This document shows positions 315-27,297 of a stretch of DNA of 64,000 bases, piece after piece (position 1 is the stretch's first letter; each line of letters opens with the position of its first letter). The DNA lies in the IMG/VR virus record IMGVR_UViG_3300020473_000011, positions 217,558-281,557 of that record. The stretch is one strand, 5' to 3'. The notes beneath the pieces are model-generated. The model had not been told where the DNA came from. It did not search any database and was given only the letters and a program-made list of their open reading frames with translations. Position numbers and translations under genes: made by a program.

Positions 315-1013
315 TTATCTTAGGCCGAGGTCTACTTGCAGGCGGCGTGTGGTGTAGCGTAATAATCCCGCTGTGCGGCTAGACGCCTCAAACTTCATGC
401 GGTCGATAAAACGGCCTTTTTCAAACAGGCTCTCTAACTCACTTAACACATCGGAGATACGATCCTTTCTGAGATTTGCAAAGTAGCTGAACTGGCCATT
501 GGCAAGTATGCGCATGACGTCTCGATGGCTCCAAGTAGTCGGGATCTTTGTTAATCGTGGTAGATTGGCCATGGCCATAGGGCTGAACGTTTTTGATGCC
601 TCGACCTCGTAGACTCTGATTTCAAAGTCATCAAAGTTCTCGTCTTTCACGCGTTCAATAAAGTCATCGAGTGTTCCAAATTCTGCATCGAGGTCAGCGA
701 TAGCCGCTGCCATGTCGTCACCCTCATACTCCACTAAGATGTCCCGTAGCCTCTTATCAGCGTCAGGGTCATCGTACAGCTCTGTCACATAGAGTGATTC
801 TGAATGCCAGTTTACGCGGTAATTACCATCTTCGGAGTAGATGTCGACACCGTCGTCGTAGTCTTTAAGTGCCATAAGGTCAGTTAAGGTCTCGAATTTC
901 TCGAAACGTAGTGCCGTTGGCTGTTTTAGTAGGTCGAAGCGCTCATCTAGGCTTCTGTGTGCCATGGCTTCATAGCGCGCGTGGCATTCGTGTAATTCAT
1001 TAAATGCTGTCAT
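315..1013 (-). CDS. Paralog-family protein (232 aa), putative virion internal protein
   Basis: YSEDGNY, FGTLDDF, FSP...LPRLTKIPTTWS, ILANGQF shared with neighbours. Confidence 0.8.
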   Translation of the reverse strand: MTAFNELHECHARYEAMAHRSLDERFDLLKQPTALRFEKFETLTDLMALKDYDDGVDIYSEDGNYRVNWHSESLYVTELYDDPDADKRLRDILVEYEGDDMAAAIADLDAEFGTLDDFIERVKDENFDDFEIRVYEVEASKTFSPMAMANLPRLTKIPTTWSHRDVMRILANGQFSYFANLRKDRISDVLSELESLFEKGRFIDRMKFEASSRTAGLLRYTTRRLQVDLGLR

Positions 1014-1021
1014 GACTACCC

Positions 1022-1753
1022 CTAACCTAGCCCTAGGTTTACTTCACAGATACGGCGTCTATTGTGCTGGTTATAGTACTCAACCATCGCGCGTGTGGTG
1101 TCTTTGTTGTCTGCCATGATGATAGAGCCATCACCTTGCACAAGACCCTGTACCTCTGCTAAGAAGTCGGTAACGCGCTTTTGATTGCCTGTCGCCAGTG
1201 ACTTAAATTGGCCGTTTGCAATCACGCGAGCAAGTATATCGACGCTCCAACGGTTAGGGAGCCGCGCCACGCGCTTTAGCTTTGAAGCAGTGACAGGGTT
1301 GAAGATGTTCTTACCTTTTTGGATGCGTACAGCAAGGTCAAAATCGTCAATACGCGCGTCATCCGTAAGCGAGTTCATGAACGCTTCAATAGTTCCATGT
1401 TCCTCGGCCATACGACCCAAATAGATGATAATAGAGTCAAGGCTCTCGTAGCCGTTTTGGTCAAGCTCAACGTACTTAACCGATTTACCTGCCTGCATTG
1501 CATCTGTAATGTCTGTGATTGCGAGACCCCATGGATCCCACTTCACCATGTACTTACCATCAGCACTGTAGACATTAAAGTTGTAATTTTTGAATTTAAG
1601 TAGGTCTTCAACACGCTTGAAGTCTTCAATGTGGATGTTTGTTTTGCTCTTCATTAAAGCGAGGCGACGTTCGTTAAGCTCTGCGCTTTCATCAAAGTCC
1701 AAGCCCGTGATGAAGTCTTCTGTGCTCTCTAGTAGGGTAGCAATTACGGTCAT
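1022..1753 (-). CDS. Paralog-family protein (243 aa)
   Basis: DESAELNERR, YSADGKY, HGTIEAF, KLKRVARLPNRW, VIANGQF. Confidence 0.8.
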   Translation of the reverse strand: MTVIATLLESTEDFITGLDFDESAELNERRLALMKSKTNIHIEDFKRVEDLLKFKNYNFNVYSADGKYMVKWDPWGLAITDITDAMQAGKSVKYVELDQNGYESLDSIIIYLGRMAEEHGTIEAFMNSLTDDARIDDFDLAVRIQKGKNIFNPVTASKLKRVARLPNRWSVDILARVIANGQFKSLATGNQKRVTDFLAEVQGLVQGDGSIIMADNKDTTRAMVEYYNQHNRRRICEVNLGLG

Positions 1754-1820
1754 TGTATTCTCACGCTCAAAAGGAAAGATTAGGGCTGCCTTATTTGCAG
1801 CCCTATACGGTTACTTGGTC

Positions 1821-2600
1821 TTAATTTTGTAGGTTAACGATACACGTGCGTGAGTCGTTTGAGTGTGCACGGTAACGTACACGAACTTCATGCGAGTCTT
1901 CGATTTCTTCGTGATAGCGGCTAACTTCAACATCTTTATTCACGATGTCTTTAAGCTCGCCTAGCGGGCTAAGACGCGCATTTCGAAGGTCTTCACGGTC
2001 TGTCGGCTCGTCGTAGCCCATGTAGAAGTTCTGCTTTAGAACCGAGAACTGGCCATTAGCGATGACCTTAGCTAACGCGTCTAACGTCCACTTATTAGGA
2101 AGCTTTGTAAGGCGCTTTAACTTAGCAGCTGCAAATGGGCTAAATGTACTTTTCGCCTTGTCTTCAACTACTGTAATAGTTACTTGGTCAACGTCAGCAC
2201 GCTCTGTTGTTGCGTCCATGAACTTCTCAATGGTGCCATGCTCTTCTTCGATGGCCACCAAGAAATTATGGATAGCTGCTGCACCACCTTGCCATGAGTC
2301 AAGCGTCACGGTCTTGCACGTCTTGCCTACGCGCATTGCGTTTTTAATTTCAGTGATGCTGATCTGCATACCTGAACCACGGTAAATTTTAATGCTGAAC
2401 TTCTCGTCTTTTGTGAAGTAGTCATAGCCCGATGTTTGGTTGATGAAATCCGTTGGCTTAGTCCAGTTTTCGAACTTCATGCTGTGCGGTAGGTTCTCTT
2501 TCAGTAGATTGAATCGACGCTCGTAAAGCTCTGCTGATTCGCAGAAATCGTCTGTCATTACTGTGTCTAGTGCTTCTAAAGCATTATTAATACGTGTCAT
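1821..2600 (-). CDS. Paralog-family protein (259 aa)
   Basis: DFCESAELYERRF, HGTIEKF, KLKRLTKLPNKW, VIANGQFSVLKQNFYMGYDEPT. Confidence 0.8.
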   Translation of the reverse strand: MTRINNALEALDTVMTDDFCESAELYERRFNLLKENLPHSMKFENWTKPTDFINQTSGYDYFTKDEKFSIKIYRGSGMQISITEIKNAMRVGKTCKTVTLDSWQGGAAAIHNFLVAIEEEHGTIEKFMDATTERADVDQVTITVVEDKAKSTFSPFAAAKLKRLTKLPNKWTLDALAKVIANGQFSVLKQNFYMGYDEPTDREDLRNARLSPLGELKDIVNKDVEVSRYHEEIEDSHEVRVRYRAHSNDSRTCIVNLQN

Positions 2601-2659
2601 TGCAATACCCTTAAAATGGAAAAGAGGGTTAGCCCCTCTTATAATTTTGAAAAAATGGA

Positions 2660-3439
2660 TTAACGGCCACCAGCCATGTTAAACACCATGCTACGTGAAT
2701 CGTTTGAGTGCGCGCCGTAGTTGATCACAACACGGCCATCATCAAGCTCTTTGGTGTAGTCGACTTTCAGGCGCTTCTCTGCAAACCCTTTGATTTCTTC
2801 CATCGGGTCAAGGCGCATGTCCGTCTTGTTCGGATCGTTCGTCGGCTCGTCGTAGCCCATGTAGTAATCTTGCTTTAGAACAGAGAACTGGCCGTTAGCA
2901 ATAGCCTTCATCATTGCATCTGCATTCCAACGCTTAGGAAGCTTAACAAGACGCTTTAGTTTTGCTGCGTTAAATGGGTTAAAGACTTCTTTAGACTTCT
3001 GCTCGTAGACATGAATATCAACGCGGCCGCTCTCGGTCTCGACGCTGCTTGTTTCAATGTGGTTTACGAAGTCTTCTAATGAACGGTATTCACCACTTGT
3101 CGCCAGCTTGTGAAGGTATTCTGATGTAGGCTCATAGCTGCGAGGAACCGCTGATAGTGAGATTTTCTTACAGGTTTTACCTGCTTTCATACCGTGTTCG
3201 ATGTCCATGATTTCGATTGAACCCATGTACGCGTGAATACGATGCTTACCGTCTTTTGTGTAGATAGTTTGACCGACGCTGATGTCATCAATCTCAGTCA
3301 ATTCTACGTCTTTGATAATAAGCTTTGAGCTTTGCTTTAGAAGGTCAAAACGGCGTTCATTTAGTTCTGCTGATTCGCAGAAATCATGAGCTTCTAACTG
3401 TTCGGTGACAGCTAGAACCTGTGCGATTCTTGTGGTCAT
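2660..3439 (-). CDS. Paralog-family protein (259 aa)
   Basis: DFCESAELNERRF, KLKRLVKLPKRW, AIANGQFSVLKQDYYMGYDEPT. Confidence 0.8.
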   Translation of the reverse strand: MTTRIAQVLAVTEQLEAHDFCESAELNERRFDLLKQSSKLIIKDVELTEIDDISVGQTIYTKDGKHRIHAYMGSIEIMDIEHGMKAGKTCKKISLSAVPRSYEPTSEYLHKLATSGEYRSLEDFVNHIETSSVETESGRVDIHVYEQKSKEVFNPFNAAKLKRLVKLPKRWNADAMMKAIANGQFSVLKQDYYMGYDEPTNDPNKTDMRLDPMEEIKGFAEKRLKVDYTKELDDGRVVINYGAHSNDSRSMVFNMAGGR

Positions 3440-3518
3440 ATCTCAGTCCCAATTGTTTAAGTTTATGACGGTAGGAGTCCCAGCCCGTCGGCTAAACTCA
3501 TTGTACAACGATGCACCT

Positions 3519-3546
3519 GTGACAGCAACGACCAATGGAGTATAAT
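3519..3546 (+). promoter_or_regulatory. Candidate sigma70 promoter for arfA
   Basis: GTGACA-16 nt-TATAAT ending 35 nt upstream of the ATG. Confidence 0.5.
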
Positions 3547-3581
3547 GGTGCATTATGTAACGAAAAATTGGAGTAATACAC

Positions 3582-3812
3582 ATGTCGAAAAGTAAGAAAA
3601 TGTCGGTCGATGCTGGCCGTGGGACTATTAATGACTGCGCCTTGGCAGCCCTTGTAACCAGTAAGGTTTTCCGTACTCAAGTTGTAAAAGCGAAGAAAGG
3701 GAAAGGCTCGTACAAGCGTAACGGAAAGCATAAGCTAAAAGCTTATCCAGTAGCTTCTTTAATTAAGAAGTTAGCGGATAGCCTTTTAGCGCGTATTTCA
3801 TTACTGCGATAA
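3582..3812 (+). CDS. arfA: Alternative ribosome-rescue factor A
   Basis: GTINDCALAALVTSKVFRTQVVKAKKGKGSYKRNGKH matches the ArfA signature (E. coli [37 protein letters not shown]). Confidence 0.88.
   Translation: MSKSKKMSVDAGRGTINDCALAALVTSKVFRTQVVKAKKGKGSYKRNGKHKLKAYPVASLIKKLADSLLARISLLR
3734..3790 (+). promoter_or_regulatory. Long in-frame hairpin in the arfA 3' end (candidate RNase III or termination site)
   Basis: GCTAAAAG..TATCC..TAGCTTCTT pairs with AAGAAGTTA..GGATA..CTTTTAGC; located just after the KGKGS...GKH codons. Confidence 0.7.
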
Positions 3813-3861
3813 CTGTTGTACAATGATTTTCGATTAATTGAGACACTTTTGAGGAAAACTA

Positions 3862-4398
3862 ATGACGACCCCTTCTCGCGCAAGCGCCGTACTAGCAAAG
3901 TACGAAGGCATGAAAGCCCCTAAGAAAATTGAAACAATCACGAACAAAAACGGCGACGAGGTTATTCTCGTTAAAGCGGGTGAGTGGGATTACCACCGCA
4001 AAGCTCCAAATGCTGACAACTCTCCAATTAAGCTTGTTTCTATGGTTGGTGGCCGTAACGGTGCAGACTATGAAATCGTTTACCGTGACCATTCGTCTCA
4101 GCTGTTCAAGTTTGAGGAAGGTCTTACCGTGGACGAAGCACTGTCAGACCGCGACTTTGCTATCCGTGAGGTGGCTATCGAGACACCGTCTAAGAGTTTC
4201 ATGGATATTCCTAACGGTGATGATGTTGCCGATGAGTTGCTTAAAATTGATGGCGTGAGCGACGTTCAGCACTATGCGTCGTTTGTTGTGACATGCAGCC
4301 CTGACGGTGTTAGTGACCGTAACGTTATTCGTGACTTGCAACGCATCCGCGCTGAAATCTTCCATGTACTAAAAGCACATGACGCGCTTGAGTCGTAA
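3862..4398 (+). CDS. Hypothetical protein (178 aa)
   Basis: GAGGA RBS, clean ORF, followed by a terminator. Confidence 0.7.
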   Translation: MTTPSRASAVLAKYEGMKAPKKIETITNKNGDEVILVKAGEWDYHRKAPNADNSPIKLVSMVGGRNGADYEIVYRDHSSQLFKFEEGLTVDEALSDRDFAIREVAIETPSKSFMDIPNGDDVADELLKIDGVSDVQHYASFVVTCSPDGVSDRNVIRDLQRIRAEIFHVLKAHDALES

Positions 4399-4415
4399 GA
4401 CCAACGCAGCTAAAG

Positions 4416-4441
4416 AAAAGGCGTCGTATGACGCCTTTTTT
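4416..4441. terminator. Bidirectional rho-independent terminator
   Basis: AAAAGGCGTC-gtat-GACGCCTTTTTT between convergent genes. Confidence 0.8.
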
Positions 4442-4461
4442 GTTGAGTCCAGTTTAGAGTG

Positions 4462-5028
4462 CTACTCGAAAAGCAGTGCGTTGTACCAACGCACAGTTAT
4501 CTTCTCTACGTAATCAATCGTCTCTTTGCTATGACGGCCTGTTACATCAGGTAAACACTTTATGATCTCGTCGTATAAGACGGCCATACCACACTTTTTC
4601 TGTGCTTTAGTGATATTGCCTGCGCCTGCATTATAGCTCGCGAGTGCAAGCTTGTAGCGGTCTTCTTGTGGCCTTTCCGACAACCAGTAGTTGTTAAGCT
4701 GGCGCATATAAAGCGCTCCCGCGTTAATCGACACGGCTGGTAACCAGAAGTCATCAAGATGGTCGTACTTGCTTTGCATATCCTTCGCTGTTGCAGGCAT
4801 GAACTGCATAACACCTCGTGCACCTACGGGAGACACTGCAAACGGGTCAAATCTTGACTCTTGCCATGCCTGAGCTTTCAAGTAGCGCCAGTCCGTGCCG
4901 AACGGCAGTAGCAGGGCGTACTCTTTAAACTCTTTGTCGTAAGTGCTTGGGATAATGCTAGCCGAGTGCGCAACCGATAATGACAGAAATTGCCAAAAAA
5001 CGACCAGCATAATAAATAGCCTTTGCAT
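4462..5028 (-). CDS. Lytic transglycosylase (SLT family), putative endolysin with N-terminal signal peptide
   Basis: AQAWQESRF (catalytic E), GARGVMQFMPATA, ALASYNAGAG. Likely start MQRLFIML at 5028. Confidence 0.88.
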   Translation of the reverse strand: MQRLFIMLVVFWQFLSLSVAHSASIIPSTYDKEFKEYALLLPFGTDWRYLKAQAWQESRFDPFAVSPVGARGVMQFMPATAKDMQSKYDHLDDFWLPAVSINAGALYMRQLNNYWLSERPQEDRYKLALASYNAGAGNITKAQKKCGMAVLYDEIIKCLPDVTGRHSKETIDYVEKITVRWYNALLFE

Positions 5029-5179
5029 TGTCACCCGCCTGTTTAATCCAGTTTGAAAAAGTGGTTTCTCGCTTCTCAATCAGGTTGTCCATCCAAAACA
5101 GTGCCAGTCGGCCAAAGCCAATGCCAACGAGTGCCAGACAGATTTTAAACAGCCCTTGGGCAATTGCAGTCTCTAACAT
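4958..5179 (-). CDS. Small two-TM membrane protein, holin-like
   Basis: MLETAIAQGLFKICLALVGIGFG... and AIYYAGRFLAISVIIGCALG hydrophobic segments, directly upstream of the SLT. Confidence 0.6.
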   Translation of the reverse strand: MLETAIAQGLFKICLALVGIGFGRLALFWMDNLIEKRETTFSNWIKQAGDNAKAIYYAGRFLAISVIIGCALG

Positions 5180-5234
5180 AATAAAGCCTCTTAGATTCGT
5201 GTTAACGTATCGCGGCTCAAGTCTCAACGATTGG

Positions 5235-5264
5235 ATTATATCACTAGAAGTATTCGGGTAGCAA
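5235..5264 (-). promoter_or_regulatory. Candidate sigma70 promoter of the lysis cassette
   Basis: Minus strand TTGCTA-18 nt-TATAAT. Confidence 0.5.
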
Positions 5265-5287
5265 AAAGGCGTCACATGGACGCCTTT
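5263..5287 (-). terminator. Rho-independent terminator
   Basis: AAAAAGGCGTC-acatg-GACGCCTTT. Confidence 0.7.
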
Positions 5288-5306
5288 GGCAGGATAGGGC
5301 ACAAGC

Positions 5307-5615
5307 CTAAATAAGGTTGCCCAAGTCGTCGACCATGTCGACAAAAGCTTCTAGCGGCTCTTCTGAGCGGTCTACAAAGGCTTTAAGATAAGCGTGATGC
5401 TTCTCTAGGCGCTCAACCTCATCTTTCGTCAGTTCTTGCTGGTTGTTTAGGTGATTACCTACACGGTCAAGCTCAGCTTTTACATCACGCATTAGGTTCG
5501 ACACCTCACGGTAATGCTTAAAGTGTTTGCGTTGGATGTCTTTTAGCTCATCCTTGCCAATGTTTGTTTGTACTGTGATTTTTGCTTCGTTTAATAGGCC
5601 AGCTGCGCGTGACAT
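5307..5615 (-). CDS. Hypothetical helical protein
   Basis: Likely start MSRAAGLLNEAK with GAGGA RBS. Confidence 0.65.
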   Translation of the reverse strand: MSRAAGLLNEAKITVQTNIGKDELKDIQRKHFKHYREVSNLMRDVKAELDRVGNHLNNQQELTKDEVERLEKHHAYLKAFVDRSEEPLEAFVDMVDDLGNLI

Positions 5616-5660
5616 GACGTTTTCCTCAATAGTTCGATTAGTTAACAGCCTAAAGAATAG

Positions 5661-5678
5661 CATCGTTGTACAATGATG
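5661..5678. promoter_or_regulatory. Palindromic operator-like site (example of ~29 copies)
   Basis: CATCGTTGTACAATGATG. Confidence 0.7.
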
Positions 5679-5873
5679 TTAAGGCACAAAAGCAACGTCG
5701 GCAGTTTTATCTTCATCGTCGACCAGTGGGACATCGTCTTTCAGGCAAAAACCGTAGTTGCCGTGATTCATAGTCAGGTGATAATCACCTTTCCCCTCAG
5801 CGCTTATTTCCTGCAACATCGCGATAGCTTCGTCCACCGTCATTATTTCTTCGTTTTTGTGAAGATAGGGCAT
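5679..5873 (-). CDS. Small acidic hypothetical protein
   Basis: 64-aa ORF with RBS, flanked by TTGTACAA sites. Confidence 0.55.
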   Translation of the reverse strand: MPYLHKNEEIMTVDEAIAMLQEISAEGKGDYHLTMNHGNYGFCLKDDVPLVDDEDKTADVAFVP

Positions 5874-6002
5874 TTGTTGTTTCCTTTAGGGTCTCGTCAT
5901 TATCACCGTTAGTGTTGCCCGCCAGTTTAGTTGGGATAAACCAGCTAGGCAACACTAATCGTTGTACAATGACTAGAGCGCGCCCCATCAGTGTTGACAG
6001 TT

Positions 6003-6112
6003 TTCTATGGGAATAAATATGGAAACCCTATTGTAATGGGCTTTATCGGGCGTTTTAGGCGTTTTCCATAGGTTTCCATAGAAATGTGTGGTTTTCGTCA
6101 GGATTTTCCATA
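6003..6112. repeat. TTTCCATA repeat cluster (inverted arrangement) downstream of the recombinase operon
   Basis: Minus-strand copies at 6003-6012 (variant) and 6018-6025; plus-strand copies at 6063, 6073, 6105. Confidence 0.75.
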
Positions 6113-6137
6113 AAAAAGCCAGTCGTTGTGACTGGCT
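6112..6137 (-). terminator. Terminator of the recombinase operon
   Basis: AAAAAAGCCAGTC-gttgt-GACTGGCT. Confidence 0.7.
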
Positions 6138-6322
6138 CGTTTACTATTGCTTTTTGGGCTGAGCTAACTTAACGGCTCGTTGTACAATCAAATCGGCTCT
6201 CGATGGGGTCACACCATTGGCTTCCTTTGGCTCTACGCCTTTTATGTGTGAATGACTATCTACCTCCAAGCTGATACCTGTTAGACTGTCTGTCACGTCG
6301 TAAATGCCCTTACTCATACTCT

Positions 6323-6754
6323 CTACCTCAAGGCTACTACATTAGCATGTCTCATCTGTGACTCTAGGTCTGACACCTGACGGCGGCTTACCCATAGCTG
6401 ATAGACTAGGTTAGCCTCGCGTGTCACTGACTTATCCAGTTCGGCTTTGTACTCGTCGCGCTCTTCGCGGTAGCGTTCCTTAGCGCCTTCCTGTTCCTTA
6501 ATATTACTACGATACTTCTCCTTTTGGGTAGGTGTGGCTTGCCCTGCTTTTTGTTTCGCAGCGTTCTTCAAGTCTTTTATACGCTGAATGACGCTAGGGT
6601 AGTGGTAAGCTGTACTTAGGCCAACGCCTGCTTCCTCTTCCACTGCCTTAGCCGATAGCTTCCGTTTAGCTTCCACGCGAATAGGCGTACCGCTCTGTAT
6701 GCGCGTAATCGCGTCAAATAGTTCTCTTTCAGTAGATTCACTCATCTTTACCAC
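6323..6754 (-). CDS. GinD/TnpC-like small HTH + coiled-coil protein
   Basis: LSAKAVEEEAGVGLSTAYHYP helix-turn-helix, then a charged coiled coil; last gene of the recombinase operon. Confidence 0.65.
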   Translation of the reverse strand: MVKMSESTERELFDAITRIQSGTPIRVEAKRKLSAKAVEEEAGVGLSTAYHYPSVIQRIKDLKNAAKQKAGQATPTQKEKYRSNIKEQEGAKERYREERDEYKAELDKSVTREANLVYQLWVSRRQVSDLESQMRHANVVALR

Positions 6755-6758
6755 CTAA

Positions 6759-8834
6759 TTAGTTCGTGAAAGGTTCAAAAGCTACGTTGGCTTTCTGTAG
6801 CATGTGTTCAATCATTTTGATCTGCATCGTGCCTGAGTACATGATCAAGTTACCGCCTGCAAAGTCTTCGGCATTCTTTTGGTCGTCACATAGCTCTTTA
6901 TGAAGGTCTAGTAACAGTTCGAAGCTTTCGTCAGTATAAATCTGGCTGTCGCAATCCATACAAAGAGCAGGGTTGCTCTCATTGTCCATGTTGCACTTGT
7001 AGCCGCTTGAGCAGTAGCCTGCACCTGCCGCATGAATGCTTATCTCGCCTTTCTTGATAAGCTTTTTCAGACCTTCCACTGACTGGTACATTTTGGGCAT
7101 TTTATCACGTGAAGCTACGATGGACTCGCCTTTTTTGCCGTACAAGGGCTTGTCTGTATTATACAAGTTGTCTGCAATTTTAGCCTGCATGTTCAAGCGT
7201 TCATCTAGGATTTGACTAATAAGCTCTAACTGCGACTTACTATCCTTATTCGCGTCAAAGAAACCCGCGAAGGCTGCGTGGTTTGCATAGTGACGCGACA
7301 TGTCTGCACAAAGATGTTTGAACTGTTGCTTTATGGCAGACACCGACGCTAAGTCATGGCGAACTGCAAATACAGCTAAGCTACGGCGCAGTTGATGTAG
7401 CGATAATTGCCATACACTACCAACGAGAATTGGGTCTGATGCCAAAGTTGGATTCAAACGCTTGTACTCTTCTACGTCATCAGCTGTAACGCGGTAGCCG
7501 CACGCGTCGCTCACTGCTTGTGTATACTGGCTATTGTGCGCAGGCAACTCTGTAGGCGGCACACCTGCCCGTTGATTCGCTACCCATAAATGGTCGCGTA
7601 GCGTTTCAATCTCCGCAGCTTTAGGGTGACCTTCATCAATGAATTTTTGGCAACGGCCTTGAATGGGCTTTGCTAAGATAGCCGCAGTTTCTATGGCCTT
7701 TTTAGTGATAGGCGCTGTCACCCAAACATCAGGCGTACCCTGATGTGAGTTAGACATCTTATGTGTTACCGACTTAATCAAAGGGACGTTTGTGTTGTTG
7801 TAATTTGCGATGTAGTAGCTGTCTGGTTTAATCTCATAGGCGTCACTACTGCGCATACCCGTATACGCCACACAGGCCACAAAACAAGTTACTTGCGCTC
7901 TGTTGTAAAGTACTGTGTAAGCACGGAATAACGCATTAGGTGCATTTATCGGTGCTGCAATAGCTTTTAGCTCTTCGTAAAGCTTTGTGCCTTTTAGACC
8001 GTCCTCAATGATAGCGCGTGATTCACGGGGTGTACGACTGTTAATTGCACGCGCCTTAACCTCGACCCCTTTTTCAATACAAGCAGTTACGCCCGCATCA
8101 TAATTCTGGTACAGTTCCGCTTGAACACGTGCTAGCACTGAGGCTTCTGCCCAGTAGCGTTCGATTGAATCGTCTAAGTGATTCAAAAGACTTGCGTAAA
8201 CGTTCGTAGGCAAGGCAGGGTACTGCCTAATTAGCTGCTTATCGTCTGCGCCAATTGCCTTGGCGCTCAACGGGTTTACACCTAGTGTTGGAACGCGAAA
8301 CGGTAATAAGCTCTCTAGGTTCTCTAGGTGCGATAACAGTGCGTTATAGCCACTTATTGATTGGGCTGATAAGTTCTTACTGGCCAAGTGTACTGCTAGG
8401 TTATCAAACACCTGCGTATTGCAAAGGGCTGCAAACGACGAGTGCTGTTCCTTGTCTAAGAAGGATGCCATGCTTTTAGCGTTAGAAAGCAGCCCTGAGA
8501 TAGAACCCGCTTTAAGCAGGCGCGTCGATCCCGCTGGTGCTCGAAGAAACGTGTAGATGATTGACTTAACTTCGGCTCTAAGTGCTGGGTTCTTAATCTT
8601 CTCAAAGCGAAAGATCAGCTTATTTCCATTTTTCAGCGATTTCTGCTGATTCAAGTCCCATATATCATCTGCAAACGTAACTACTTCGCCATTGGGGAAA
8701 GCGGCTACGGTGATGCTCTTTTGCTTGTCGTCACTCAGTGGGCTTTTTAGCTCACCAAGGTTGATAAAATCAACCTTGCCCTCAAAGACTACATTTGCGT
8801 CATCTGTGACGTGAAGCTGTGTGGCTGCACCCAT
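6759..8834 (-). CDS. Large tyrosine recombinase (GinC-like) with C-terminal Cys cluster
   Basis: YTGMRSSD, LHQLRRSLA, QFKHLCADMSRHYA; C-terminal YCSSGYKC...CMDC. Confidence 0.8.
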   Translation of the reverse strand: MGAATQLHVTDDANVVFEGKVDFINLGELKSPLSDDKQKSITVAAFPNGEVVTFADDIWDLNQQKSLKNGNKLIFRFEKIKNPALRAEVKSIIYTFLRAPAGSTRLLKAGSISGLLSNAKSMASFLDKEQHSSFAALCNTQVFDNLAVHLASKNLSAQSISGYNALLSHLENLESLLPFRVPTLGVNPLSAKAIGADDKQLIRQYPALPTNVYASLLNHLDDSIERYWAEASVLARVQAELYQNYDAGVTACIEKGVEVKARAINSRTPRESRAIIEDGLKGTKLYEELKAIAAPINAPNALFRAYTVLYNRAQVTCFVACVAYTGMRSSDAYEIKPDSYYIANYNNTNVPLIKSVTHKMSNSHQGTPDVWVTAPITKKAIETAAILAKPIQGRCQKFIDEGHPKAAEIETLRDHLWVANQRAGVPPTELPAHNSQYTQAVSDACGYRVTADDVEEYKRLNPTLASDPILVGSVWQLSLHQLRRSLAVFAVRHDLASVSAIKQQFKHLCADMSRHYANHAAFAGFFDANKDSKSQLELISQILDERLNMQAKIADNLYNTDKPLYGKKGESIVASRDKMPKMYQSVEGLKKLIKKGEISIHAAGAGYCSSGYKCNMDNESNPALCMDCDSQIYTDESFELLLDLHKELCDDQKNAEDFAGGNLIMYSGTMQIKMIEHMLQKANVAFEPFTN

Positions 8835-8835
8835 C

Positions 8836-10584
8836 CTATACCTCCAAACTTAGTGTAGATTTCGCGTAGGAACGCCAAAATTTGTGGATTCCTTCGCTGA
8901 ACAGCTTAGATTCTGCGGCTTTTACGTTATCTTTAACGAACAAAGCAAGCAGGCTCTCAATTCTTGCCAACAACTTACCCTTTGATTTCTCGAAGTGGTC
9001 GGCATCCTTGTACTTACTTGAAGACGCAAGAACGACTTCTTTGTAAGACAACAATTGGTAGGCATCGTCGATAGTGTCAACTAGCGCATAGTTGCTGCAC
9101 GTTAGGCAGCTATCAAACATCGTACACGGCATTTCCTCAGCACTGGCTAGACCAAGCTTCTCAAGGATAGGCGCATGTTTGCGTTGTGATTTAGTTGGGT
9201 TTGCACCCTCATACGGGTTAGAACAACGACCGCCCGATGGTACAGCCTCATTCTTTTTGTACTTCTGGTTTATGGCATCCAGCGGTAGTAGCTCAATACC
9301 AAGCTCGTCAGCAAGTTCTTGCTTGGCCTCGTCGACCGTCAAACCCTTACCGAGTTTACTTAATACTGTGATGGCTGCGTGTGACTGCTCGTAGTTCTCC
9401 GCTTCGTTACCACTGCCGAGGTAGTGCTCAACTGCGACGCCTGTTGAGTGCCCAGCGTCTTTTGCAGCGGCTACGATACCTGCTGCTCTGGTAGCTGTTT
9501 GGAAACGGTTTTTACGGAAGCGCTCGGCACTAAGCATTAGCTTGGAACCATCGTCAGCCTGTACCTTAAAATGTCTGAATAACATATCAGACACAGCGGT
9601 GATGAAGTTCATCACAGGCTGAACAATCTTGCCGTTGACTTGTAAGAAACTAAATAACTTCCCATCAGCTGCGGGATTATGCTTTGTATTCTCTAACAGT
9701 AGCTCTACCAGTGCTATCTCACGAGGTGTAGACATTAAGCGCGAAACATCATGGTTCGCACGTGCTTTATGCGCATTGATCTCATAGACTGTGCTCGACT
9801 TAGATTTTTTGCGCGTGATACAGTCAATTGTTAGGCTCTGCAATACAGCCGTATTTAGACCTGTGTATAGCGATAAGCGGAACATGCCTAGGGTACTTAA
9901 TAGCCACCAAGCTGTCCCTTTAGCCTCTGGTACGTTATAAGAAAAATTGCGGTCATTAGCCCTCAAACTAAACGTGCTACCGTTAGGGTTGGCTTTCAAT
10001 TGCTTAGACAGCTGGTCGTGCAAGTCACAAACCGCTTTCTTTAGGCAGCGTTGCTCGGTCTGAGAGTAAGCGCGGCGTACCTCACGACCACCACGTTTAA
10101 CAAAAGGCGGCGTGGCTCCTATGATCGGCTTAGGGTCAATACCCGCGACCACCAGTAGCTTCTTGTAAGCTGACCAGTCCCCCCATGCGGTTGATTGCTT
10201 GTAGCGTACCCGAGGGTCACGTACTTTTTGAGTCCAGTACTCAATGACCGCGTTACCACCTTCTGGTGAATCTAGGCTTACTTCTAATTCGTCACTTAGG
10301 GCTGTGAGTTTGCACCAGCGCTTATACGTTGACTTAATAGTGCTTGCGCTATTTGTCGCTGTCGTAACCCATTCCCATAATGCGTTAACGATGTGCTGGC
10401 GTGCTGGCACAAGCTCAGCATGCACGTCGCAATTTAGATGGTAAAGATGTGATACAGCCACTTCGTAATTTTCCCCGCTTGGAAGCGTTACCTTACGCGA
10501 TTGTGCGTGCATTGGTAAAGCCAGCGCTGTAGGCTTACTCGGGGCTTTTAAACTTGATGCACGTGATCGACTAATTCTTCGCAT
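8836..10584 (-). CDS. Degenerate tyrosine-recombinase-fold protein (GinB-like)
   Basis: YTGLNTAVL (catalytic R replaced by N), ERFRKN, AGHSTGVAVEHYL; C-terminal GGRC...CTMFDSCLTC. Confidence 0.7.
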   Translation of the reverse strand: MRRISRSRASSLKAPSKPTALALPMHAQSRKVTLPSGENYEVAVSHLYHLNCDVHAELVPARQHIVNALWEWVTTATNSASTIKSTYKRWCKLTALSDELEVSLDSPEGGNAVIEYWTQKVRDPRVRYKQSTAWGDWSAYKKLLVVAGIDPKPIIGATPPFVKRGGREVRRAYSQTEQRCLKKAVCDLHDQLSKQLKANPNGSTFSLRANDRNFSYNVPEAKGTAWWLLSTLGMFRLSLYTGLNTAVLQSLTIDCITRKKSKSSTVYEINAHKARANHDVSRLMSTPREIALVELLLENTKHNPAADGKLFSFLQVNGKIVQPVMNFITAVSDMLFRHFKVQADDGSKLMLSAERFRKNRFQTATRAAGIVAAAKDAGHSTGVAVEHYLGSGNEAENYEQSHAAITVLSKLGKGLTVDEAKQELADELGIELLPLDAINQKYKKNEAVPSGGRCSNPYEGANPTKSQRKHAPILEKLGLASAEEMPCTMFDSCLTCSNYALVDTIDDAYQLLSYKEVVLASSSKYKDADHFEKSKGKLLARIESLLALFVKDNVKAAESKLFSEGIHKFWRSYAKSTLSLEV

Positions 10585-11842
10585 GACCTTCCCCTAGTAA
10601 AGCTATTTCAAGTTCACGGTCACGAGCCTCAGCGATGTATCGTGCTGCGTCGTTACCATTTACGAAGTCTAGGTAGTCCATTAAGGTTTTAACGTCCTCG
10701 TGACCCATCCAGCGCTGTAGAACACTAAGCGCACTGCCACTGTTCATTGTTTCCAATAGCTCAGATAGGCGGTGTGTTGCATACGTCGAGCGTAAATCGT
10801 GGAATGAATACTCGAATGGGTTTGAGGTTTCGGCGCGTATCAGGTCAACCACGCGACGAAAGCCTTTGTACGCAGCTGACTGACCGAAGCCTAGACCTTT
10901 CTGAGTAATGAATAATGGTATGTTACCGCCGTCAAACGCGTCGCTTGCTTCAAATAGCGCACGGCGCTTCTTGTGTTTCTCTGATGAGCGGTAATCTAAA
11001 AGTTTGTTGTTTAACCAGTCAGGCATTTCGATTGGGCGGTCTTTGTTGCCCTTAGTTTCGTTACCACCTGTACTTAAACCAATCCAGACTTCGTTACCAC
11101 CTGATAGCTTAGCGTCGACTAATTTCTCTGTGTACGTAGCAACTTCGGTAATACGCATGCCTGTAAACAACGACAGCTGAACCATCAATTGAGTTTCTTC
11201 GTTTGCACGTACTAGGTAATCCCCCAATAAGCGTAGGTCTGACAAGGTTAAAGGACGTAGCACACGACCCCCTTGTTTCTTACCACCGACAATACGTAGG
11301 TCAGTACTATCAACCACAATTTTCTTAGTGGCCATCGTATCGCTTTTAAGGTTGTGGGTGAGTGATTCACAGCGGAATGGGGCGCGGCGTTGGTCATATT
11401 CGAATACGCCCTCATACAGCGCCCATTTGTAAAAACTCACGACAACATTCATGTAGCTTTTAGCTGTAGACGCAGCTAACGTACCGCCATCAACGGCAGC
11501 TTGCAGCGTATCTCTGAAAACGTAAGTAGGGCGCGTAGACGGCGTCGTACCAAACGTAAACCAATCAAAGTTGTTAATCTCTAAGAATCGGCAGTAGAAG
11601 AGTAAAGCTGTAGCTGTACTAGATAAACTCTTTAGGTTCTTACGCAGCTTACGGTCGAAGAAGTACATCACCGCCTCTTGAACGATTTCACCTTCTCCAT
11701 TGAATAAAACTGGGAACCTATCAATCGTACGTGATACCTCATCGCTGAACACGGCCAACAGTTCGCCAGCGTCTTCTGTGATCTCAACCGATTTATGCAA
11801 CGGCATATCGGTAATCCAATGTAGGTAAGCTTCTTGTGTCAT
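10571..11842 (-). CDS. Tyrosine recombinase/integrase (GinA-like)
   Basis: FTGMRITEV, TKGNKDR, FHDLRSTYA, WMGHEDVKTLMDYL: complete R-K-H-R-H-Y set. Confidence 0.92.
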   Translation of the reverse strand: MTQEAYLHWITDMPLHKSVEITEDAGELLAVFSDEVSRTIDRFPVLFNGEGEIVQEAVMYFFDRKLRKNLKSLSSTATALLFYCRFLEINNFDWFTFGTTPSTRPTYVFRDTLQAAVDGGTLAASTAKSYMNVVVSFYKWALYEGVFEYDQRRAPFRCESLTHNLKSDTMATKKIVVDSTDLRIVGGKKQGGRVLRPLTLSDLRLLGDYLVRANEETQLMVQLSLFTGMRITEVATYTEKLVDAKLSGGNEVWIGLSTGGNETKGNKDRPIEMPDWLNNKLLDYRSSEKHKKRRALFEASDAFDGGNIPLFITQKGLGFGQSAAYKGFRRVVDLIRAETSNPFEYSFHDLRSTYATHRLSELLETMNSGSALSVLQRWMGHEDVKTLMDYLDFVNGNDAARYIAEARDRELEIALLGEGHAKN

Positions 11843-13051: not shown

Positions 13052-16000
13052 TTAGGCTAGGTTACCCCATATAACGTACCCGTATTCGGTATCTCCCAGC
13101 GTATAACGGCGATATAGCCAGCTACCGTCATCAGGGTCTCTGTACAGGATAGGCTCAACCACACCGTTTCGTATTGCCTCGATCATAGCTGCACGTGGTG
13201 AGTAAGTTCCTCGTGCTGTTCCGTTTTGCACTTTCTCGATCAACTCTTCACGGTACTTAGTACGCAAGTCACGTAACCACTGCATCAGGTCAATCTGAAC
13301 GATACCTGCCTTATAGCGTCGGAAGTCCTCACTTCGGAACTTAATAGGCAAGTTAACATCAACCCTGTCATGGAACGGCAATGGCTTCATAAGTGAGTAG
13401 TCGATGCTATCAAGCACAGTGGCCATATCAACAGCATACTCTACAAACAGGTCATCAGACTTAGCCACGGCCGCTTGCTTATAGCGGTCAATAATATCGA
13501 ACGTTGGAAGAATATTACCGACTAGCTTCGCGTAGTCAGCCGTGTCCATCGGCTTCATCATACGGTAGTGCATGTTCGCAACAGGGTCACTGAGCAGGTA
13601 CTGCTCGTAAGCTTGGCCAACGGCATTCACCATATCTTGGTAACTCGCGTACTTAGAGTGCAGCACGCCACCTGCTTCGGCACCTGTTGCCTGTGCGTAC
13701 GCTTCATCAATACGCGCGTCACTCAAGCCCATTGCCTTCAATGAACTGTAGAGCGAAGCAAGACCTTGCTCGTACTGCTCGTACAGACGGTCTAAGCGTT
13801 TTGCACTCACAGACTCTTGGTCATACTCGTCGTACAACGCAGTGTCACCTAGGTTAGACTGATCGAACTTATTGTAGCTCTCCGTGTCGCCTAGCCCTGC
13901 TTGTGCTACATCGGCGAATAGCTCGCCTTGCCCTAGCTGATACTGTTTCAGGCGCATGTAGTGTGCCTTTGACACCTCTTTTGCTTGTGCAAAGAACATA
14001 TCAGCTTGTGTAACGCTTAACCCAGCTTGCAGTAGTGCATTGTAGATTTCAGGCGCAACCAAGTCAGACTGTACTAGCTTGTTGTAAATAGCGCTGTCGC
14101 TTTCCAGTGATTGCTTGTAGCTCTGGTATGAGTCTGTTGTCTCTGCCAGCGCTTGACGCATAGCATGGTAGAACTCCGTCATACTCTCAGGCTTTTGTGC
14201 ATACCACTGATTACCAAACCAGTTCTCGCGCATGACCTTAACGACCTCGTCGTGCTCTTTCTCAGACAAGGCGACCTTTTGTTGTTTGAAGTCCCAGTGG
14301 TCGATAGCCACTTCGGTCAAGTTTGCGACCCACTTCTGGTATAGCTGACTTTCGCTCGGCGCAGCAAGTCTCTCAAAATCAAGACTATCAGCCAGCTTTG
14401 TGATCGTCTTGCGTAGCACAATCTCAATCTTCTTCGCGATACTCGACACATTCTGTGGATTAATACGCTTCATATCTGTAATGCGTATATCCGACGATGA
14501 TACCTTGTCCCGCAACCCGATTGGTCGGTCGTTCAACAGACTGTAGCCACGGCCATCACGTCGCATCGCTATCCAAAAGTCGGTCGACACTATATCGCGT
14601 ATTGGTACATACGCCTTGTTGGCTGCATGACCCAGTGGCACACCCACTGGGAGTGATAAGCTATAGGCCGTTGACGTTGGACGTACATGCGGTGTAAAGC
14701 GCTTTTTAATGTCCGTCTTTGTCGCCATTTCTGACGTCAGTGTTTGATAGAACTTAGTGTGTGTTGCGTAACGGCTTTCACTTAGCTGGTGGTAGCCCGT
14801 ACCACTAAATACTTCGCTGTAGTTGTCCAGCTGTTCAAAATGGATCGCGTTAGAGAATACGTCGAACGGTGACCACTTCGTGTAGGTCACATCAGCATTA
14901 ACATACTCTGACTCTATGCGGATAAAATCTTTATTCACGTAGTCATGCGCTTGTGCATTACGCAAGCGTATTACATCGGTAATTTTCACGTCTGGACGCG
15001 TCCGTACATCTTGGTCATACCGACGGTTCACGTCGACAGCTGAGACCTCAAGCTGCACCGAGTGGATAATACGACTTAACGTATGTTGGTCGTAGCGCTG
15101 TGTCCATTTTGGTAAACGGTAGTTCTCCACAAATGTTCGGGTAGGGATGACCCAGCGGTCAGTCTCAACCGTAACAGGTATACGTTGACCCATCGCACTT
15201 TGTTTGTACAGTACGGATGAACCCACGCCTTTTATTTGGTCGAGCATCTTAACCCACGCACTACCTACAATGCTGATTGATGGCGCTGTCGGCATCATAA
15301 CTTGATGGTAGCGTGCGCCCTGCATCATTGGTGCCGCATGCTGCTGAGGTTTGACCCATTGCTCACCCGTCATACGCACAGCTGTGCTGGTGGTCGGATT
15401 AACCTGCTTAGTCAGAATATCTTGTGACAAACTCAATGAGTCCGTTTTCTTCTTGATAAGCTCAAGCTCTTGGGTTCCCATTATCTGGTCTGTACTTGCA
15501 CGGTACGGCGACTGTATATGACTGCGCCCTAAGCTCTGCGAGATATGACCGTAGTCTTGCAACCAGTTCGGCAGCCCATAAGGGAACGTATGGCGGAATT
15601 TAGGGAACCAGTACTCAGCCTTTTGAGACAGCGTACTTCTAAAGCCCGTCAGTGAATCGAACTTAACTTCTTGTAGGTTAAGACTCGCCTTAGCAACTTT
15701 CATTTCAATACTTTTCAGACGCATAGAGTCTGCTTGCGACCACGGGGTCAGCTCTATTCGCTGAGTTACATAGCGCGTCAGTGCCTTTCGGCCATTGATG
15801 AGCTGTAGTGACCCCGATACATGGAAATCACTCTTAGTCATCGTCAGTGCAAACGGCTGGAACTTCGACATGTATGTCGTGCTCATGAATTTACCGTCAC
15901 GTGGCTTATAACCCTTCACGGTCTTAACGCGCATGTGTCGCCCAAGTGCATCAGTCACACTCGGGATCTTCATGTGCTTGTAATGCTCCGTCGTTGCTTT

Positions 16001-19000
16001 CTCCATCTGAGCACCTGCCATCGCTAAGTGGAAGTCCGTTGCTTTTGCAAGGTCAACCGCTGCAAACTTTGGATTAAACCCACGCAGTACTTCAAGTGCT
16101 ACATCAGTCAGGACAGGATTCTCGGCATAGCCTTCCTTCACGGCCATCGTTTCGTGCAAGTTGATCAGGGGCTGCATTACTTTTGAGTGTGCGTCGGCTA
16201 AGCGTATCGTCGTTCCAAACACTTCACTTGTCGTGTCAATTTTTGGCACGTTGTCCATCGTGATCTTAATCAATTCGACGGCAGTCTCCATCGTGTTGAT
16301 TTGCAGCTTAGTGCCCGTAACATCAGCTAAATACTTAGCCCAGCGCATAACAACCGACTCGACATGCTTCATTGCAAGGCTGTGCGGTTCCATCACAAGC
16401 ATAGCAACGTCGTTCATGATGGCATTGTATGAGGTTTCCGATTGCATTAGCACATCATTCATCGCCTTGATTTGACTACCTGCAATATTAAAGTTAGCCA
16501 CTTCTGGTAACTGCTCTACAAAGTTGTCCATCAGCCTCATGTGAGTTGTTTGAAGTCCTGCTATCTCCATTGAAGACTCTTTACTCAGCGTCACCTTATT
16601 TTGCAGCGCACGTTGTGCAAGTCTATTTAGTAATACAGCCTGTTCAAGTATAGTAAGAGCATCTTGGTTTTGGTAGTTAACGCCAATTTCTTTCGTGAGC
16701 TGACGGTCGCGAACAAGCAGCAAGCGCTCGCCTAAGTGTGCTGCATAGCTCGTTAGGCTCGCCAGCGACACATTGTTTAGCTCTGTACGAATGTGACCAC
16801 CACGCGTTAGTTTTGCACTGCCCTGTAGCTCAGTTGTTTTGACTGTGCTTAACGGCAAACCATCCTCATAATGCGTCTGGCCACCTGCAACGCGTGTGTA
16901 CAACAAGCCATCGGCCGTCGTGTCTTGTGACATTACGACGGTAGACGCGACGCCGTGCTCAATCGCTTGTCGTAGCGTCTGGTACTCGACAGTTGTCTCG
17001 ACTAAATTTGACGCATAGTCAGTGCCTGCCACGACTGAGGCATCGCTACTTAGGCGCGACGTACGCTGAACGGCCGAAGTTTCAATACGGTCTACCCAAT
17101 AGCGCACCGATGGCTCTGACGTTAGTGTGACCGCCTTAACGTGTTTACGGTTAAGGTCATGACCTTGACGGTGATAGATGTCCTGCTGTGTGCTACTAAG
17201 TTTAGACGTAACCAGCTGTGTACCAACTTGCACATTAGTCCATGATGCTTTCGTAAATGGCAGCTCTTCGCGGTGTGCTGATATTGAATCGGCCGTAACC
17301 AGCTTAATTAGCTCATCAATCGTAATACCGACTTTATCTAGCTTGAAGTTAACTAAGTCAGAGAGCACGCGGCTATTCTTGTCGACCTTAGTGAAGACAC
17401 CTTTTGGTATGGCTTTCAGTTGGCTAAACGCCCAATCGACTAGATTAGACTTTACAGCTTTAAGCCAGTCATTCGTATTGTAGGCGACTGCCTCAGCCTC
17501 AATATTGCTAACAGCATCGCGGCCAATCAGCACCGCATTTATCTGTGTTGAGGTATTTGATTTAGTCTCAAAATCAACACCATTCAATACACGCGTAATC
17601 CCTGAGTCTATGGCTAGTTGGGCACTGTCCATTAAAGTTGTGGATGCGTGCAGGGCAGTGTCTAGTGTCTGTGTGTTCTTTGGCGAAATTGCTTGCGAGC
17701 GTATCAGTTTCACAAGGTCTTGGTAGTACGTTGACCCCGAAATCACGTCCATACCCACAGGTTGTGGGAACATCGGCACGCCAGCTCTTTGAACATCAAA
17801 GTTACTTGCTGTTAGTGAATAGTTCTCGACCTCTATGATACGCAGGTCTACCTTGTTCTCTACGCGGGTGAATGGCTGTAGCGTGAACGCCTGACCCTTA
17901 ACAAGTTCAGCACCTGTCTTAGCGCCACGCGCCACAAGCGTTGACGACTTACTCGTGCCTAGGAAGCCCTGCACGCGCAGTGGTACCGTGCTAAAGCGGT
18001 TAATGGAAGTCTGCGCCATGTAGTATTCTAGAACGCTCTCAGCCTCACTACGGGCTTCGGTAAGGCGCAGAGGAACCACATTAAGTGACACCTTCGTTTC
18101 ACCCATAGCAAAAGGTACTGCGTCCATAAAGCCACTACGGCTCTTTTCAACAGTGAACGTTAAGCGGTCAGTCCTTGTGCTCATACCACTGACTTTATGC
18201 AGTTGCAGCGTATTCTCTTTGGTTGACGCTTTGTGCTTCCCGAATGGGATCAGGCGTGCTTCACTTGAGAACAGATAGCCCATCTTATTTAGGTCTATCG
18301 TTGTGGCGAACTTCTTAATCGTGTGGTTAACGTAACCTAGCCCTTTTGCTTGCGCTAAGGTTGAGCGGTGTACACGGCTGGGTATTTTTAACCCATCGCT
18401 ATAATTCCACGCCGATCCTGATTGCATTTCAAAGGGTACAACCTGTGCTTGTGCTACACGATTGCCCGTGCCCACATCAAACGCTGCGCGCTGCCACTTG
18501 TAGGCTGCATCACGGAAAAGTCGCAGGGCGACTGTCGAGATAAAACCGCTTTGACTGTTCAGTGTAAAGGTGACATCGTCGTCAGCGACTGACGACCGAG
18601 CTAACGCATTGTATAACAGCTCAATTGTGCTTGAGAATGCGTTACTCTCGCGTGCATCATAGCTTACCGTTTCAGGTAGACTGCTTGTAAGGTACGCTGC
18701 CGTTAAAAACTTGACTAGTTCCGCCGCAGGGACATCCTGATCGTCTCTAACGAGATTGATTATGTCTGTCCCAGCGGTGCTCAAGCGTGACATTAAGTAG
18801 CTCACGTCCTCGGCACTATCAGACGACAACAATGCCCGTGTGAAGCGTACTTTATCGACCCCCGAGTCAATTGACCAATTGCTCAGTACTTCGTAAAAAA
18901 GCTCAGCTACGTCACTTGTTCCTTTTGCTTGAGAAAAGACCAGCTTTTGTGCAGCTGGCATATTGCCGCCATTATCCAGACGGGTATTAATCCCCACCAC

Positions 19001-22596: not shown

Positions 22597-23817
22597 CTAC
22601 TTCTTCTTTTTAACTTCTGACTCTGGAATACCAGCGTCAACAAGATGAAGCATAATCAACTGCGTGTTGTATGGACCTGTCGGTTGGATGGCCACATAAC
22701 GACGGTACAGCTTCTCGCCAGAATCTGGGTCAGTCTCACCATACACGTGTACGTTAACTGGTAAGCCTGAGCTGATCACGTCTGCTGAGGTGAACGCAAC
22801 CATATCCATTTCTGATTTGAAGCGGAAACGTGCCGTGTTCAAGCGTGATGGGAATAAGATGGCGTAACGAGAACCCGCTTTTTCCACACTTGCAACACCG
22901 ATGTCACGCATTTCGATACGTGCTTGTTGTTGACGTAAGTTAACCACGGCGTTCGAGTCGCGGCTATTACGCCATGCGTCAGCTTGACGTGAAGGTGCAT
23001 TTACATCCTTCTCGCGTACAACAAAGCGCTTAACACAGATCGCACCGTTCTTAGTTGCGCCACTAATAGGCACATTATGCTGCTCAGCATACTCTTCGAA
23101 GAATTGCTGGTGGGCAGGCGTACGCTGGTTAGCCTCGTTAGAGATACCATACAACGCAAAGATCGGGTTACGACTACCAACAGGGTCAGCATCGCGAAGA
23201 GGCTCACCTGATGACTGGTCAACAGGGCGCTGAATAACGAACCAGCTTTGTGTCGGTGGATCACGCTGCTCGTCACCTTCTAACCACATACATAAGAAGA
23301 TACCGTAGTCTGTCACCGAGCCACGCCATGAAACAGGGTGTGCACGAAGGCGGCCTTTAACCACTGACGTATCGAAAAACGCACCTTGGCCGTTTTCAGA
23401 ACGCTTAGTTTCAACGGTATCAATATATGAGTACTCGTCGGCATGGCCTAGGTTACCCGATGGAATACCACGTGCATCCTGAATTACACCACCGTTACCT
23501 AAATCGCACTGTAGTAAGGTCGTTACCTGTGTCGAAATAGTTTGGTAGTTAAAGCTTGAATCAGCATGACCAGACTGGAACTGATTATTGCTGCTCATCT
23601 TGAGTGCAATCGGCTCATCTTCAAATAGATTTGTGCTATCACCAAGCGGCATGGCTAGGAAAGAGTAATCACTGTTATCAGTGAACTTCTCAAGCGAGTT
23701 CGGGAACTCATGTTTAATTTCCCAGCCCACAGTTTCCAACCAGCGCGCGATGTCGAATAACATCACGCGTAGGTCGCTGTAGCCGTATTTTACTGTACTG
23801 TCTACAGAAATTGACAT
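22597..23817 (-). CDS. QRPVD-family putative structural protein, A-type (406 aa)
   Basis: PTQSWFVIQRPVD, GSRNPIFALYGI, FVVREKDV, FPSRLNTARFRF, AFTSADVIS. Confidence 0.75.
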   Translation of the reverse strand: MSISVDSTVKYGYSDLRVMLFDIARWLETVGWEIKHEFPNSLEKFTDNSDYSFLAMPLGDSTNLFEDEPIALKMSSNNQFQSGHADSSFNYQTISTQVTTLLQCDLGNGGVIQDARGIPSGNLGHADEYSYIDTVETKRSENGQGAFFDTSVVKGRLRAHPVSWRGSVTDYGIFLCMWLEGDEQRDPPTQSWFVIQRPVDQSSGEPLRDADPVGSRNPIFALYGISNEANQRTPAHQQFFEEYAEQHNVPISGATKNGAICVKRFVVREKDVNAPSRQADAWRNSRDSNAVVNLRQQQARIEMRDIGVASVEKAGSRYAILFPSRLNTARFRFKSEMDMVAFTSADVISSGLPVNVHVYGETDPDSGEKLYRRYVAIQPTGPYNTQLIMLHLVDAGIPESEVKKKK

Positions 23818-23831
23818 TGTCTCACCTCAAC

Positions 23832-25748: not shown

Positions 25749-25936
25749 TGCTCATTTCCTCGTTACTTTAGTCTCAGCACCATTGATACGGCGATACTGC
25801 AATCTCAGGTGTAGTTATGATTGTACAACGGATGTGCAGGCGTTGTACAACGGAGACTATAAAAAACTTACAAGAAGCAACCTAGGGAAAAACTGCACAC
25901 TAGGCCACTTCGTCAATTAATACCTTAAAACGTTCT

Positions 25937-27283: not shown

Positions 27284-27297
27284 TAGTCAGCCCCTTC

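Follow-up and report, generated by a model that had tools for sequence, protein, structure and literature searches.

A jumbo-phage lineage carries arfA with a conserved hairpin in its reading frame

The message of bacterial arfA contains a stem-loop that causes either premature termination of transcription or cleavage by RNase III (PMC8012679). In the E. coli protein, the basic stretch KKGKGSY-R-GKH sits in the mRNA channel of the ribosome, and a single substitution, A18T, abolishes the activation of RF2 by ArfA (PMC8012679). In every bacterial arfA that we examined (Pseudoalteromonas, Vibrio, Algibacillus, Rheinheimera, Shewanella, Klebsiella, Salmonella, and two further bacteria), a strong hairpin lies directly past the conserved core, in one of three arrangements. 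In the arfA genes of Pseudoalteromonas, Vibrio, and Algibacillus, an in-frame stop codon is present in the loop, and a U-tract follows the stem. In Shewanella and Rheinheimera, the hairpin is contained within a longer open reading frame and is then followed by a U-tract. Finally, in Salmonella, Klebsiella, and another enterobacterium, the hairpin again lies within the reading frame, now without a U-tract, which is the RNase III type of arrangement described for E. coli (PMC8012679).

The subject of this work is this known device, the arfA gene plus its hairpin, in a new carrier, a lineage of jumbo phages. Phages carry tRNAs, and some also carry tmRNA and translation factors. In particular, huge phages are known to carry tmRNA genes and thus to supply parts for the rescue of translation. 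In B. subtilis, the rescue backup BrfA is likewise controlled through a non-stop mRNA, so that its synthesis depends on the failure of trans-translation. The phage arfA described here would follow the same logic as BrfA and the tmRNA of huge phages, but with different molecules. A search of the literature yielded one mention of an ArfA in a phage, gp30 of pelagiphage HTVC027P, an ArfA-domain protein that is expressed both early and late (PMC12753301); no mention was found for jumbo phages or for the control hairpin in a phage.

The phage gene and its hairpin

The gene lies in a stretch of 64,000 nucleotides, here called the window, which comprises bases 217558-281557 of a 281,557-bp IMG/VR virus record, i.e., the end of that record. 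A 281,411-bp contig (L057) represents a second assembly of the same phage and is identical over the compared arfA region. Within the window there are four tail-sheath paralogues (phrog_12249), which resemble the tail sheaths of Erwinia, Pseudomonas, and Yersinia jumbo phages, although at an identity of only 26-28%, and a gene for an SLT lytic transglycosylase; the whole record contains 14 tRNA genes. Together with the finding that the locus is common to six variants (see below), the tail sheaths and tRNAs of this virus record bear out the original prediction that it is a phage that carries arfA. Aragorn detected no tmRNA in the phage record, and searches of the record found no SmpB, RF-1/RF-2 domain, RNase III, Pth, or RtcB. 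These searches covered a record that is only about 67% complete by CheckV, so phage-encoded tmRNA, SmpB, or RNase III may have been missed. A megablast search of positions 2600-6800 against plasmid and phage collections gave no match, nor did Rfam and tRNA scans of the window.

Judged from its sequence, the gene (Table 1) is arfA. Its product matches the Pfam ArfA family PF03889 with 74 bits (E 6.3e-21, residues 9-51), compared with a curated cut-off of 25.5 bits, and the match covers positions 2-44 of the 44 in the profile, indicating a full-length ArfA. NCBIfam gave no match for this reading frame, but that library probably contains no model for ArfA, and the Pfam match is decisive. The phage protein also aligns with E. 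coli ArfA as resolved in three ribosome-RF2 structures (5U4I, 5MDV, and 5H5U; E about 3e-7). Thus, the ArfA signature that had been noticed in the sequence holds up against both the family profile and a protein of solved structure. In alignments with E. coli ArfA and with 13 homologues, the KKGKGSY-R-GKH stretch is kept in the phage protein; A23, the counterpart of E. coli A18, is still alanine. The alignment with E. coli ArfA shows R46 and K49-H50 among the kept channel residues, and H50 is the last conserved residue of the phage protein. The retention of both the RF2-activating and the channel-binding residues, including the A18 equivalent, points to a normal activity of the phage ArfA.

Table 1. 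Features of the arfA locus (positions in the window)
Feature	Position	Strand	Details
TTGTACAA palindrome	3501-3508	.	74 nt before the arfA start codon; invariant in five relatives
Sigma-70-type promoter	3519-3546	+	GTGACA, 16 nt, TATAAT; 11 of 12 consensus positions
Shine-Dalgarno GGAG	3570-3573	+	8 nt before the ATG; read from the sequence
arfA open reading frame	3582-3812	+	76 codons plus stop; functional conserved core, codons 1-50 (3582-3731)
RNA hairpin within the reading frame (codons 51-70)	3734-3790	+	5' arm 3734-3759, loop 3760-3764, 3' arm 3765-3790
Non-conserved read-through tail and stop	3791-3812	+	TAA at 3810-3812; unrelated sequence among variants
Second TTGTACAA copy	3816-3823	.	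4 nt past the arfA stop, 39 nt before the next gene (3862-4398)

A 57-nt hairpin had been predicted directly after the functional N-terminal part of the protein, and it is found at exactly those coordinates. An inverted-repeat search yields arms of 26 nt and a loop of 5 nt, and the sequence folds into 23 base pairs. The hairpin begins with the last base of codon 51, one codon past H50, and ends within codon 70. By itself, it folds at -26.5 kcal/mol, which places it in the top 0.05% (z = -4.0) of 42,630 windows of 57 nt taken from both strands of the 64 kb; about seven loci in this stretch fold equally well or better. The surrounding 111-nt region gives a z of -3.9 relative to shuffled sequences. 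No run of U residues follows the hairpin on its 3' side.

Among bacteria, the arrangement is close in form to that of arfA (yhdL) in the enterobacteria E. coli and Salmonella. Besides the family and the core, the two have in common that the hairpin lies in the reading frame just past the core, that the frame continues beyond the hairpin as a tail of low conservation, and that no U-tract follows. There are also differences. The phage hairpin is 57 nt long, compared with 49 nt in Salmonella, has more internal loops, and starts one codon past the K-H pair rather than about five. In addition, the phage copy is virus-borne and is preceded by its own predicted sigma-70-type promoter. In sequence, the nearest relatives are the arfA genes of Pseudoalteromonas, Vibrio, and Algibacillus, which have 63-81% identity to the phage gene over the core. 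In these bacteria, the hairpin starts at the homologous tyrosine stretch, E-S/P-Y-L-I-A, which corresponds to K-A-Y-P-V-A in the phage. The bacterial genes have the stop codon in the loop and the terminator-like U-tract, whereas most phage variants have neither; one variant (L058) keeps the stop-in-loop form. These comparisons suggest that this group is the likely donor and that the phage hairpin derives from that of the donor.

Conservation of the gene and of the hairpin RNA

A protein search yielded five close relatives of the phage ArfA, with identities of 73-96%. The encoding contigs were fetched for four of these, L002/L003 (277 and 416 kb), L004/L005, L007/L008, and L009, and all of them match the synteny of the window, with paralogous genes of 232-263 residues upstream on the opposite strand. 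A sixth variant, L058, was added by a scan for the conserved promoter region, i.e., independently of the hairpin, and has both promoter and gene in common with the others. In a phylogenetic tree, the six phage proteins form one clade (support 99/91) among ArfAs of the Alteromonadales type. Between the variants, dN/dS over codons 1-50 ranges from 0.02 to 0.15, with synonymous sites near saturation (pS 0.57-0.77); from these values, purifying selection on ArfA in the phage lineage has been strong. The nearest cellular matches come from Pseudoalteromonas, Rheinheimera, Vibrio, Algibacillus, and Shewanella. None of the cellular genomes searched contains an arfA of the phage type, the best match reaching 71% identity over the core only.

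The hairpin has been conserved along with the protein. The same stem-loop forms in each of the six variants, with free energies of -17.6 to -34.0 kcal/mol. In the six-sequence alignment, 96.4% of the cells fall into standard pairs, compared with 34-56% in controls with slid partners. Four pairs have undergone compensatory double changes (C-G to U-A twice, U-A to G-C, and U-A to C-G), in a set of six sequences in which 13 of the 23 pairs never vary. The covariation score was reached by none of 500 shuffles, a control that related sequences may exceed without any structure. Furthermore, the nucleotide identity of the hairpin is 72-89% and drops to about 25% directly downstream. When the window is compared with the distant variants, the hairpin is more conserved (82-88%) than the core of the gene (73-77%). 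The same is seen at the level of codons: where the window and L004, L007, and L009 encode the same residue, the codon itself is identical in 34 of 45 cases in the hairpin and in 64 of 119 cases in the core.

By comparison, the end of the reading frame has drifted. The stop codon is located in the loop in L058 and otherwise lies 3 (L007, L009), 6 (window, L002), or 11 (L004) codons past the hairpin. With the stop in the loop, the 3' arm of L058 is non-coding, yet it has been kept and carries a compensatory change from T-A to G-C; consequently, coding cannot explain the conservation of this arm. Taken together, the compensatory pairs, the identity above that of the core, the moving stop codon, and the retained non-coding arm indicate that the hairpin is a selected RNA element rather than a by-product of coding. 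At the level of sequence and evolution, then, the proposal that the phage retains the arfA control hairpin is upheld by the bacterial position of the hairpin, its compensatory changes, and its conserved synonymous sites. The hydrophobic tail that had been counted as a further feature of the protein did not fare as well, since residues 71-76 are neither conserved nor consistently hydrophobic in the relatives. This tail is an accidental read-through of the 3' arm and of unrelated sequence, different in every variant, and it is probably seldom translated.

The same evidence bears on the idea that the phage acquired arfA recently, as a passenger for which it has no use, and that the hairpin is simply a legacy of the donor. 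The closest relatives are indeed bacterial arfA genes with the same kind of hairpin, and mobile elements are found nearby, a recombinase operon in the window and an IS605 TnpB gene in relatives. However, synonymous divergence has come near to saturation while all six variants have kept arfA together with its promoter, synteny, and hairpin. The low dN/dS and the compensatory changes also argue against a passenger, as does the failure to find the phage-type gene in a cellular genome. We consider this explanation highly improbable and already close to refuted.

Expression and possible function

The promoter upstream of arfA (Table 1) is the sole match to the promoter pattern in the window, where 0.04 matches would be expected. 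Both of its hexamers are invariant in the five relatives, and so is an upstream CATTGTACAACGATG element. Since the promoter is near consensus, transcription of arfA by the host RNA polymerase is predicted, and it would thus probably be early. In two marine metatranscriptome runs (X12/X14), high-depth contigs match the window exactly over the genes on either side of arfA, but none covers positions 3494-3855. The contigs stop at 3493 and resume at 3856, leaving out exactly the arfA cassette. Because the share of words is 0.58 in several DNA runs too, as it is in the metatranscriptome runs, this gap probably reflects a strain difference, in which the cassette is different or missing, rather than expression. 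Four other runs that do contain arfA look like low-depth DNA.

The reading that we favor, with moderate confidence, is that arfA and its hairpin were captured once and kept, and that the hairpin acts as it does in bacteria, providing a rescue reserve on demand. In this model, an ancestor of the jumbo-phage lineage would have acquired arfA a single time from a marine donor among the gammaproteobacteria (Alteromonadales or Vibrio type), and the gene would have occupied a fixed locus since then. The host RNA polymerase would transcribe the gene from the near-consensus sigma-70 promoter. To judge by homology, by position, and by the signs of selection, the hairpin would then end the mRNA inside the reading frame, as in bacterial arfA, presumably through cleavage of the stem by the RNase III of the host, and a non-stop message would result. 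Ribosomes would stall at the 3' end of this message, and as long as tmRNA-SmpB has spare capacity, the nascent ArfA would be tagged and degraded. Once trans-translation has no capacity left, ArfA would instead be released in a truncated form of about 51-60 residues. This protein would bind the empty mRNA channel, recruit the RF2 of the host, and free the stalled ribosomes. The phage would thus have a rescue reserve that is produced only when needed, independently of continued host transcription. The model assumes that the host provides RNase III, RF2, and tmRNA.

Of the two ways to shorten the message, cleavage by RNase III appears likelier than termination, because there is no conserved U-tract and because the stop codon of L058 lies in the loop. 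An intrinsic terminator was considered as a separate reading and rejected; a terminator scan detected none on the + strand here, and the bases past the hairpin differ in every variant. The drifting stop codon and the unconstrained tail are as expected if ribosomes rarely reach them.

These features must also be weighed against a second explanation, in which ArfA is functional but the hairpin serves another purpose, as a 3' stabilizer, as a processing site ahead of the downstream gene, or as a weak terminator. ArfA would then be made constitutively, from an mRNA that includes its stop codon, with no gating by tmRNA. The stop codon in the loop of L058, as in Pseudoalteromonas and Vibrio, is consistent with this idea, since a transcript that ended past the hairpin would retain its stop. 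Furthermore, the ArfA of Pseudomonas phage pf16, a 47-aa reading frame with its own stop, and those of the pelagiphage type manage without a hairpin in the reading frame. Against it are the location of the phage hairpin, which is exactly that of the regulatory hairpin of bacterial arfA, the freely drifting stop with its unconstrained tail, and the absence of a conserved U-tract, which does not suit a typical terminator. Another use of the hairpin therefore seems to us possible but rather unlikely.

A third explanation would make ArfA a takeover factor. The phage protein would bind stalled ribosomes or RF2 and either compete with the tagging by tmRNA of phage proteins whose transcripts have been processed or disturb the rescue system of the host. 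In this respect, the release by ArfA of an untagged product from a non-stop mRNA has been discussed for the Neo protein of DRT2 (PMC11100668), and, speculatively, the phage ArfA could free untagged products from non-stop mRNAs in a comparable way. That the phage proteins form a clade with a tail and an N-terminus of its own would also fit. Nevertheless, the conserved RF2-activating and channel residues, with the A18 equivalent among them, indicate a normal activity, and if the hairpin gates synthesis, ArfA would be unable to pre-empt tmRNA. We regard such a function as improbable.

Returning to the on-demand reserve, the retention of both the gene and its regulatory RNA over a long divergence would mean that it pays the phage to restrict the production of ArfA to times of saturated trans-translation and, consequently, that the yield of phage is in some conditions limited by the capacity for rescue. 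The original prediction had proposed a backup for a tmRNA system overloaded by host defenses or phage nucleases, and this is a plausible inference only. A more specific version, which we put forward tentatively and think rather unlikely, is a module triggered by demand. In this case, host RNases, tRNA-cleaving defenses, or the turnover of mRNA by the phage itself would saturate tmRNA with non-stop complexes during infection; only then would the phage ArfA be released, restoring ribosomes for the translation of phage proteins after transcription of host arfA has been shut off. If this is true, the phage encodes a rescue factor that depends on a release factor and whose production is set by the quality control of the host, and its arfA also serves against abortive-infection systems directed at RNA. 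Phage arfA offers a simple genetic handle on when ribosome rescue matters in infection and against RNA-targeting defenses, and the six natural variants can serve directly for covariation analysis of the arfA hairpin.

ArfA in other phages and neighboring elements

A survey of phage databases, which had been suggested together with the original prediction, revealed full-length arfA in at least two other phage lineages. In a collection of phage sequences, the sole phage hit was Pseudomonas phage pf16, in which the unannotated ArfA reading frame contains the full domain (72.5 bits). This frame is found at L055:2504-2647 (about 131775-131918 of KU873925.1, on the - strand of the record) and partly overlaps pf16_199, a hypothetical gene annotated on the other strand. 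Its stop codon lies inside the 5' arm of a short hairpin. In IMG/VR, ArfA-like reading frames were present in 43 further viral contigs. Among these, L014-L016 encode a full-length ArfA (65 bits) amid phage genes that include an Rz-like spanin; here the hairpin has been kept directly past the core and is followed by a U-tract. Like gp30 of HTVC027P, the pf16 and L014-L016 proteins are phage-borne members of PF03889, but all of these proteins lie outside the jumbo-phage arfA clade.

Most of the other contigs in this set (L012-L054) contain a divergent marine type, small viral reading frames of 41-68 aa that match the C-terminal half of the profile only (NPVAKEVRTPKFKP..VVKAKKGKGSY, 28-37 bits) and have a lysine at the place equivalent to E. 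coli A18. These proteins may represent a separate, channel-binding offshoot of ArfA that belongs to pelagiphage-like viruses. No hairpin within the reading frame was found among the pelagiphage-type IMG/VR loci scanned.

Several other features of the window deserve mention. Head-to-head with arfA lie four paralogues of 232-259 aa (315-3439, - strand), which match nothing in Pfam, PHROG, or NCBIfam and are kept upstream of arfA in all of the relatives fetched. On the other side, a tandem operon (6323-11842, - strand) contains reading frames of 423 aa (with a Phage_integrase domain), 582 aa, 691 aa, and 143 aa, a layout that resembles Tn554- or GInt-type mobile elements with several recombinases. 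L002/L003, whose ArfA is 96% identical, carry an IS605-type TnpB gene in place of this operon in the part that was fetched; the region downstream of arfA therefore appears to be a landing place for mobile DNA. Farther on, a reading frame of 3108 aa without a Pfam match (13052-22378, - strand) adjoins the four tail-sheath paralogues, which are consecutive (22597-28638, 406-638 aa).

Finally, the palindrome TTGTACAA, which flanks arfA on both sides (Table 1), recurs throughout the phage. The copy past the arfA stop is kept in L002, L007, L009, and L058. The window contains 29 copies, compared with 2.1 expected, and the whole 281.5-kb record contains 149. The copies are mostly intergenic and are often paired at a distance of 22-53 nt, and the extended form is about cATTGTACAAtg. 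TTGTACAA is possibly a phage-specific promoter or operator. Besides the sites at 3501 and 3816, examples are found at 25821/25843, 28723/28757, 34692/34723, 41028/41062, and 47943/47965.
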